A stretch of DNA of 62,108 nt, counting the filler, from Platydemus manokwari (taxonomy: Eukaryota): the NCBI GenBank assembly GCA_037951405.1. It is 6 parts of 6 records of this genome, joined end to end, with 100 filler letters (N's around TTAATTAATTAA, not from the genome) between each part and the next. Parts side by side here need not be neighbours in the genome. Positions count along the whole stretch, not along the records: positions 1 to 9,005 come from JBBMOY011315427.1; 5 more parts are not named here. One strand, written 5' to 3'. A program made the translations under genes and the position numbers. Numbering within the stretch: the stretch's first letter is position 1; each line of letters starts with the position of its first letter. Below the pieces are notes generated by a model. The model worked only from the letters and a program-made list of their open reading frames with translations. It had not been told where the DNA came from and ran no database searches. Of the stretch, positions 7,002 through 8,104 are shown piece after piece.

Positions 7002-8104
7002 CTAAAAACTTTCGCTCACAATCAAAGCTTTCGTATCCGTCAAACACTGTTCCAATTTTTTGCCCAATCGAAAATAACCGTAATCTTTTTTCAATCGAAA
7101 TATATCATGACCGGTATCGTATCGTTTGATTTCTTGACTACTGTAATCTGAAATGTTAGAAGATGTTTAATAAAGTAAAAACAACGAAATTCATTGTTAT
7201 TGAATCGTTTTTTTTCCATGATGTTGTCAACATATTGAAAATCGTTCGAAGCCATTTTACAACGTTAATTTATTCTCCCAGCTAGATCGAAGAACAACGA
7301 TATGTTTATTTTGTTTTGTTTTCAATTTTCTCCTGATAAAGTCTCGCAGATATTTCCCATAATCGATGTAGAATGTTGTTGATTCATTAAAACCATCCAT
7401 TCCATATCATAACAATTTCATCGTTATCAATTAACAGACCATGTGGAATGTGGAATAAATCACTTCTTTACCAATGTAATTTAATTAGGCTGCAGATGGA
7501 TCATTGGTGGCAAGTTAATTTAATGTTACCAACGGATTTTGATGATATTGTTATCGACAAATAAGTATTCTATTAATTACATTTACTCTCAATCACTGTT
7601 TTCCATTTACTTTTTTTGTTCATCGTTTTATTGATGATTATTTTTATTTATTCTAAAATTAATCTTACTGTTGAGGCTAAAAGTTTTGTTGTAAAAATAT
7701 TAACGTAAACTACGACACTAGAAATCGAATGTTTTCGTCTGACATCGTTCAAATAGATGTATTGATATAAATATTTAGCTAGGTTTCATGAGATTTTAAT
7801 GAAATCATTTGTTTTACTAAATCAAATAACTCGATACCGTTATGAATAACTCTCTTATTAATAAATATCGTTCACTGTCGATTACTAATAATTCGTATTT
7901 ATAAATTTTCTCTAATTTTCAAACCTGAAAAAGCCACTCAAGTTTGAAAATTGAAAAACAACCCCACTGTCAATCACTCAATAAATCATCATTTATAAAA
8001 TATCGTAAACTTATGAACAACCACTTACTTTCCACAGCGGCCAATATGAGGACGACGATGACGAAAACGTTGGGAGTATTGGTCAAAATAAAATTGAAAA
8101 CCAT
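7002..8104 (-). CDS. Two-exon secreted neuropeptide prohormone, 73 aa (-FRL/-FRLamide peptides; resembles planarian spp-18/spp-19/npp-22-type precursors)
   Basis: Exon 1 (8104-8029) encodes MVFNFILTNTPNVFVIVVLILAAVE, a hydrophobic signal peptide, and ends at A|GTAAGT (phase 1). Exon 2 (7147-7002) follows TTTCAG| in the matching phase: NYSSQEI-KR-YDTGHDIFRL-KK-DYGYFRLG-KK-LEQCLTDTKALIVSESF*. It has dibasic cleavage sites, a repeated FRL motif and an amidation Gly. TATA box upstream, AATAAA downstream. Confidence 0.88.

Follow-up and report, generated by a model that had tools for sequence, protein, structure and literature searches.

The minus-strand locus at positions 7,002 to 8,104 is very likely a genuine gene for a small secreted neuropeptide precursor of the flatworm FRL-containing family, likely with a third exon and probably a divergent paralog. 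The window analysed is a stretch of 62,108 nucleotides (filler included) from Platydemus manokwari assembly GCA_037951405.1, and the gene lies in its first piece (positions 1 to 9,005, JBBMOY011315427.1). The first-pass annotation had proposed a prohormone gene spliced together from a signal-peptide exon and an exon with dibasic sites and two -FRL peptides. When the minus strand was read and translated, all of these elements were present where that annotation had placed them, and the proposal is borne out by the sequence together with a family HMM (E 1.7e-11).

Coding exon 1 (8029..8104, minus strand) is 76 nt long, i.e., 25 codons plus 1 nt, opens with an ATG at 8104-8102 and encodes MVFNFILTNTPNVFVIVVLILAAVE, a predicted signal peptide whose h-region, as judged by hydropathy, is VFVIVVLILAAV; a basic n-region is absent, and cleavage would occur after Ala23 (LAA/VEN; slashes mark cleavage or splice points throughout). 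Intron 1 (7148..8028, 881 nt, phase 1) has the form GTAAGT...CTAAC...TTTCAG, with the branch-like CTAAC at 7159-7155, and its donor A/GTAAGT and its acceptor ttctaacatttcag/AT at 7147 (TTTCAG/AT) divide an AAT (Asn) codon as A/AT. Coding exon 2, taken to the conserved phase-0 donor (7020..7147, 128 nt), encodes (N)YSSQEIKR-YDTGHDIFRL-KK-DYGYFRLG-KK-LEQCLTDTKALI; read through to the TAG, it gives (N)YSSQEIKRYDTGHDIFRLKKDYGYFRLGKKLEQCLTDTKALIVSESF. The probable intron 2 donor, GTGAGC at 7014..7019, stands in phase 0 after ...KALI (AAA GCT TTG ATT/GTGAGC), and the VSESF and TAG that follow (7002..7019, TAG at 7004-7002) are either the true C-terminus or read-through of intron 2. An AATAAA at 6971..6976, 26 nt past the TAG, could serve as the poly(A) signal of a two-exon transcript, and a TATAAA, a possible TATA box, lies at 8139..8144, 35-40 nt upstream of the ATG. 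Since no single ORF spans both exons, the full gene needs splicing. No GnRH-like exon was found inside intron 1 by pattern search.

Only one public sequencing run contains DNA of the locus; it is genomic, and its contig spans intron 1 at a depth of ~13. Three trinucleotide microsatellites, (TTA)33 at 1-99, (AAT)33 at 6746-6845 and (ATT)46 at 8866-9005, were also observed, the last reaching the end of the piece, and the contigs of this run break at two of the three.

The FRL-containing prohormone family is known from Schmidtea mediterranea, where it comprises grh-1, spp-18 and spp-19, with schistosome npp-28 being related (Collins et al. 2010, PMC2953531, Tables S2-S5). The layout of spp-19 is signal-SDDLIVKR-KHIGHQIFRL-KR-GYHFFRL-RK-DEKC..., that of grh-1 is signal-GnRH-like peptide-GKR-YHTGHQMFRL-KK-GFHYFRL-KK-PSNC..., and the GYHFFRL peptide of spp-18/19 was seen by mass spectrometry as a free acid (Collins et al. 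2010, PMC2953531). In BLASTP comparisons, exon 2 of the window gene was identical to the grh-1 core at 19 of 33 residues (58%, E 1e-9) and to the spp-19 core at 17 of 29 (59%, E 2e-9). A profile of the window exon, grh-1 and spp-19, searched against 1.84 billion proteins, returned flatworm family members only, plus one false positive: Smed spp-18, the "GnRH-2" of Stylochoplana pusilla, an npp-28-like protein of Schistosoma curassoni, and two gene groups of Macrostomum lignano, of which one includes a GnRH-like peptide and the other does not. The false positive, P0007 (558 aa, ENA), is a repeat protein and was rejected as a family relative.

Seven relatives were used for comparison, namely S. 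mediterranea grh-1, spp-19 and spp-18, two Macrostomum genes, the Stylochoplana "GnRH-2" and the Schistosoma npp-28-like protein. A control HMM was built from these seven flatworm sequences, with the window sequence left out, and run against all stop-to-stop six-frame fragments; it matched the exon-2 fragment only (39.4 bits, E 1.7e-11), the next best match having an E of 0.78. The shared plan consists of KR, GHxxFRL, a dibasic site, a 7-residue FRL peptide, a second dibasic site and a Cys at the fourth residue, and F, R, L, K and C form invariant columns in the alignment of the window sequence with its relatives (alignment A3). The likeness to spp-18/19, pointed out in the first reading, is a real family relationship by both BLASTP and HMM. 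A word-index protein search with exon 2 gave no match, the same kind of search with the alignment returned just the two input S. mediterranea sequences, and no near-identical protein was found in the public protein collections searched. As a member the gene is new and rather divergent, but the family itself was already named in 2010.

For the later alignments, grh-1 was taken as GFHYFRL (UniRef E3T7U7) and not as the GFFHYFRL of the supplement text. The text of Table S5 in PMC2953531 gives grh-1 as ...KKGFFHYFRLKK...NIK, against ...KKGFHYFRLKK...NIR in UniRef E3T7U7; the peptide list of the same paper reads GFHYFRL, so that the additional F is an error of text extraction or of typesetting.

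The gene structures of S. curassoni and Macrostomum were determined by locus mapping and exact re-translation. The coding exons are 82, 116 and 48 nt in S. curassoni, with introns of 12,880 and 5,199 nt, and 79, 167 and 78 nt in Macrostomum, with introns of 73 and 235 nt; the window gene has coding exons of 76 and 128 nt (the latter to 7020), and an intron 1 of 881 nt, and no third exon was found. Intron 1 is in phase 1 just past the signal peptide in all three: in S. curassoni it reads ATT A/GTAAGT...TTAAG/AT and splits the Asn codon A/AT in the same way as in the window, and in Macrostomum it reads CGC A/GTGAGT...CAG/TG. In the two relatives, intron 2 is in phase 0 and separates the two cysteine codons of the C-terminal peptide (AGA/GTAAGT in Schistosoma, GCG/GTGAGA in Macrostomum), and the probable GTGAGC donor of the window, also in phase 0, stands at the homologous place. 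FRL-family intron positions and phases are thus kept over three distant flatworm lineages, with intron lengths from 73 nt to 12.9 kb. In Macrostomum lignano the gene is present in at least two near-identical loci (L002/L003); the S. curassoni locus is L001.

A third exon with the second Cys is expected, and VSESF is probably intron read-through, because the phase-0 intron between the cysteines is conserved and the window keeps a GTGAGC there. The two-exon model of 73 aa put forward in the first-pass annotation is for the same reason (GTGAGC at 7019) probably incomplete, and the single-Cys C-terminal peptide that it proposed as a possible dimer rests on this probably incomplete, intron-reading model. 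If the two-exon model were nevertheless complete, with the TAG at 7004-7002 and polyadenylation after the AATAAA at 6976-6971, the product would be a truncated family member of 73 aa with a single Cys in its C-terminal peptide, LEQCLTDTKALIVSESF. This alternative is possible but doubtful. In its favour, the stop stands five codons past the putative donor, with the AATAAA 26 nt further; however, an in-frame stop shortly past the donor is nothing unusual in an AT-rich intron and AATAAA is frequent here (3.6 per kb), and GTGAG, which occurs just three times on the 9-kb minus strand, stands exactly at the homologous place and in phase 0. MAFFT pairs the terminal SF with the conserved SF of the family, which fits the shorter form, but the second Cys and its tail are present at the protein level in 7/7 relatives, where the Cys lies in [LVF]-C-x-x-D-x-x-[FMV], 18-22 residues past the first, and in the two relatives with a determined gene structure a phase-0 intron at this place sets them apart on an exon of their own. 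In the 7 kb downstream, no exon 3 with the family motif, and no convincing third exon, was found by regex, HMM, enumeration of phase-0 acceptors or two PSSM scans, which also agrees with the two-exon form. For the three-exon gene that we favour, exon 3 may lie beyond the piece or may have diverged; otherwise the two-exon form may be real.

One weak exon 3 candidate was observed at 1147..1203 (minus strand), reading tttctttttatttcag/NFIEKNCSEKPELPPRLL to a stop, where phase 0 gives a second Cys. Its polypyrimidine score (0.87) and exon GC (0.49) are the highest among all downstream acceptors, but the L-C-x-x-D-x-x-F motif of the family is missing and the family-HMM score does not rise above noise, and it is assigned as exon 3 with low confidence. 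Other positions were rejected. The segment 350-406(-), which reads FLLVVSVQCQICRSENIFL to a stop, gave the best of 220 Cys positions by the exon-3 PSSM (C-x-S-E-x-x-F-L-stop, at 382(-), CQICRSENIFL and stop), but there is no AG acceptor in phase 0 and an in-frame TGA stands just upstream. SNLCRNLHKYL at 5979(-) has no AG ahead of it, and the scores at 4311(-) and 1203(-), the latter an end of the weak candidate, were at noise level.

Antisense to this candidate, a short ORF at 1123-1209(+) (core 1141-1176) reads NHYQRKFRLKQTRGQFRLLRAVFFDEILK to a stop that overlaps an AATAAA; it has two FRL motifs at the 9-residue spacing of the family and is identical at 8 of 12 residues to the window's own FRLKKDYGYFRL. 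Its single-comparison E of 6e-4 is not significant over the six-frame search space, and the ORF could be chance or an inverted-duplicate relic. The GC-richest 60-nt stretches (1131-1203, 1711-1790 and 1991-2060; 0.45-0.50 vs 0.265 overall) equal exon 1 in GC; they gave no Pfam, Rfam or tRNA match, and may be exons of the FRL gene or of another gene. At 6640-6663(-), NEQPYHFRLVTD recalls YHFFRL within an 85-aa ORF (6593-6850) that crosses the (AAT)n microsatellite; the likeness is probably chance, because there are no dibasic sites and no HMM score.

As predicted from sequence, exon 1 would supply the signal peptide and exon 2 the segment KR-YDTGHDIFRL-KK-DYGYFRLG-KK-LEQC.... By analogy with the family and with planarian peptidomics, a PC2-type convertase would cleave at KR and KK after signal-peptide removal, a carboxypeptidase would trim the basic residues to leave YDTGHDIFRL as a free acid, and peptidylglycine alpha-amidating monooxygenase would turn the Gly-extended peptide 2 into DYGYFRL-amide. 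The third product would be a Cys-containing C-terminal peptide, the transcript most likely continuing from ATT/GTGAGC (7019) to a third exon that carries the second Cys. Peptide 1, YDTGHDIFRL (7092..7121, minus strand), lies between KR and KK and is homologous to YHTGHQMFRL of grh-1 and KHIGHQIFRL of spp-19. Peptide 2, DYGYFRL plus Gly (7062..7085, minus strand), is followed by KK at 7056-7061 and stands at the position homologous to the G/A/V-YHFFRL of the relatives. The conserved x-Y-H-F-F-R-L (GFHYFRL in grh-1), otherwise kept from Macrostomum to Schistosoma, is absent; the window has D-Y-G-Y-F-R-L, with His replaced by Gly, and differs from the conserved heptapeptide at three of seven positions. 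The FRL directly abuts the dibasic site in 7/7 relatives, and a Gly before it is found in the window gene only, so that the Gly-KK after the second FRL copy, already singled out in the first reading, is indeed unusual. DYGYFRLG-KK is a variation within the family plan and not a loss of the peptide.

The gene is probably a divergent paralog and not a plain ortholog of spp-19 or grh-1, because peptide 2 departs from the deeply conserved xYHFFRL and alone has an amidation Gly; the altered peptide 2 could also mean relaxed constraint. A further reading, offered tentatively and judged rather unlikely, is that of a lineage-specific extra paralog in which the free-acid xYHFFRL was remodelled to an amidated YFRL-amide, an ending shared with the unrelated NPP-22 peptides, with peptide 1 left unamidated, so that one precursor would give ligands for two receptor classes. 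If true, a neuropeptide would have changed the chemistry of its C-terminus, and perhaps the receptor that it acts on, within an old family that descends from GnRH-like precursors.

Still less probable is a pseudogene: a duplicated FRL-family gene, no longer expressed, that is decaying and without its last exon. The divergence of the otherwise invariant xYHFFRL peptide, the missing exon 3 and the weak family-like fragments elsewhere in the window speak for such a pseudogene, but the start codon, the reading frame and both splice sites are intact, as are, despite ~50% divergence, all three dibasic sites, the two FRL motifs and the Cys, and exon GC is still raised. The locus also appears in no RNA run, which reflects the runs available for the organism and not silence.

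For the functional gene that we prefer, the surrounding DNA served as a background. Enumeration of in-phase ATG..GT first exons that could join 7147 gave nine in 1.9 kb upstream, among which 8104-8029 was the sole strongly hydrophobic one and the sole one with a consensus donor. The splice motifs are rare: the entire 9-kb minus strand contains two copies of GTAAGT, five of TTTCAG and four of CTAAC. GC is 0.41 and 0.34 in the exons, vs 0.28 in the intron and 0.20 downstream, the window having an overall GC of 26.5%. TATAAA (12 times on the minus strand in 9 kb, 1.3 per kb) and AATAAA (32 times, with a chance of ~0.2 of one within 60 nt) add little, because both are frequent in AT-rich sequence; the TATA box (8144-8139) and AATAAA (6976-6971) pointed out earlier are present, but as common motifs they lend the gene little support. 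In Pfam, exon 2 matched no family and eight other ORFs in the window had no match above the cut-off, and an Rfam and a tRNA scan of the window found nothing. Short ORFs and TATA/AATAAA motifs are abundant at 26.5% GC, yet a meaningless chance ORF is extremely improbable and effectively refuted, because the leave-out HMM matches the exon-2 fragment only, with the remaining window as internal control, and because intron position and phase are conserved with the relatives and the hydrophobic first exon is unique.

The family, its FRL peptides and the link to GnRH-like precursors were already known; the novelty lies in this divergent member and not in the type of system. Gene callers routinely miss small prohormone genes of this spliced kind, and the conservation of intron position and phase between Macrostomum, Schistosoma and the window provides a structural rule for annotating FRL-family genes. 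With a Gly ahead of KK, the second FRL peptide is predicted to be amidated, whereas free acids alone are known elsewhere in the family. In planarians, spp-18/19 mark discrete neuron subsets (PMC4214590), and knock-down of FRL-family members lowers stem-cell numbers after irradiation (2026 preprint, 10.64898/2026.10.10.758126).

Among the named systems, Smed-spp-19 (UniRef E3T7U8, PMC2953531) has, like the window gene, a signal peptide, a short spacer, KR, xxxGHxIFRL, a dibasic site, a 7-residue xYxxFRL, and a dibasic site followed by Cys at the fourth residue, both lack a GnRH-like peptide, and core identity is 59%. It differs in that GYHFFRL-RK is without Gly and is a free acid, whereas the window has DYGYFRLG-KK, and in its 39-residue C-terminal peptide with two Cys, against one Cys as read so far in the window. 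The match to grh-1 (58% over 33 residues) is closest in peptide 1 (YHTGHQMFRLKK vs YDTGHDIFRLKK), and peptide 2 ends in YFRL in both. The GnRH/corazonin-like precursors (grh-1, Mlig008027 and S. pusilla GnRH-2) carry QSYHFSNDWLPG-KR and similar sequences right past the signal peptide, where the window has NYSSQEI-KR; the GnRH-like Q-x-[YFM]-HFS-x-x-W-x-P-G-KR is absent from the window precursor, and W-x-P-G occurs in no frame of the intron or window. Because there is no GnRH-like peptide, the gene is, as far as its predicted precursor tells, of the spp-19 / Mlig013730 type.

Schistosoma npp-28 (Sma/Sja-npp-28; S. curassoni CAH8595979.1) shares with the window the phase-1 intron 1 splitting Asn as A/AT and, probably, the three-part plan, with a phase-0 intron 2 a few residues past ...K-x-x-I, as at the probable window donor. 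It has a single FRL peptide (AYHFFRL), introns of 12.9 and 5.2 kb and an exon 3, EPYIVCPEDREFLGL, whereas the window gene has two FRL peptides and an 881-nt intron 1, and no exon 3 was found in the 7 kb downstream. Smed-npp-22, the AKYFRLamide precursor of the RL/RMamide group, whose AKYFRLG-KR was seen by mass spectrometry to give AKYFRLamide and AKYFRLG (Collins et al. 2010, PMC2953531), shares the C-terminal YFRL-Gly-dibasic with the window. The resemblance to npp-22 noted in the first reading holds for this YFRLG terminus and for nothing beyond that motif: the window precursor has one Gly-extended copy only and does not align further, and npp-22, unlike the window gene, has an N-terminal Cys-rich region and three identical hexapeptide copies and lacks both a GHxxFRL peptide and a Cys peptide at the C-terminus. 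The overall plan, as predicted, fits not the multi-copy npp-22 / RL-RMamide precursors but the FRL-containing family.
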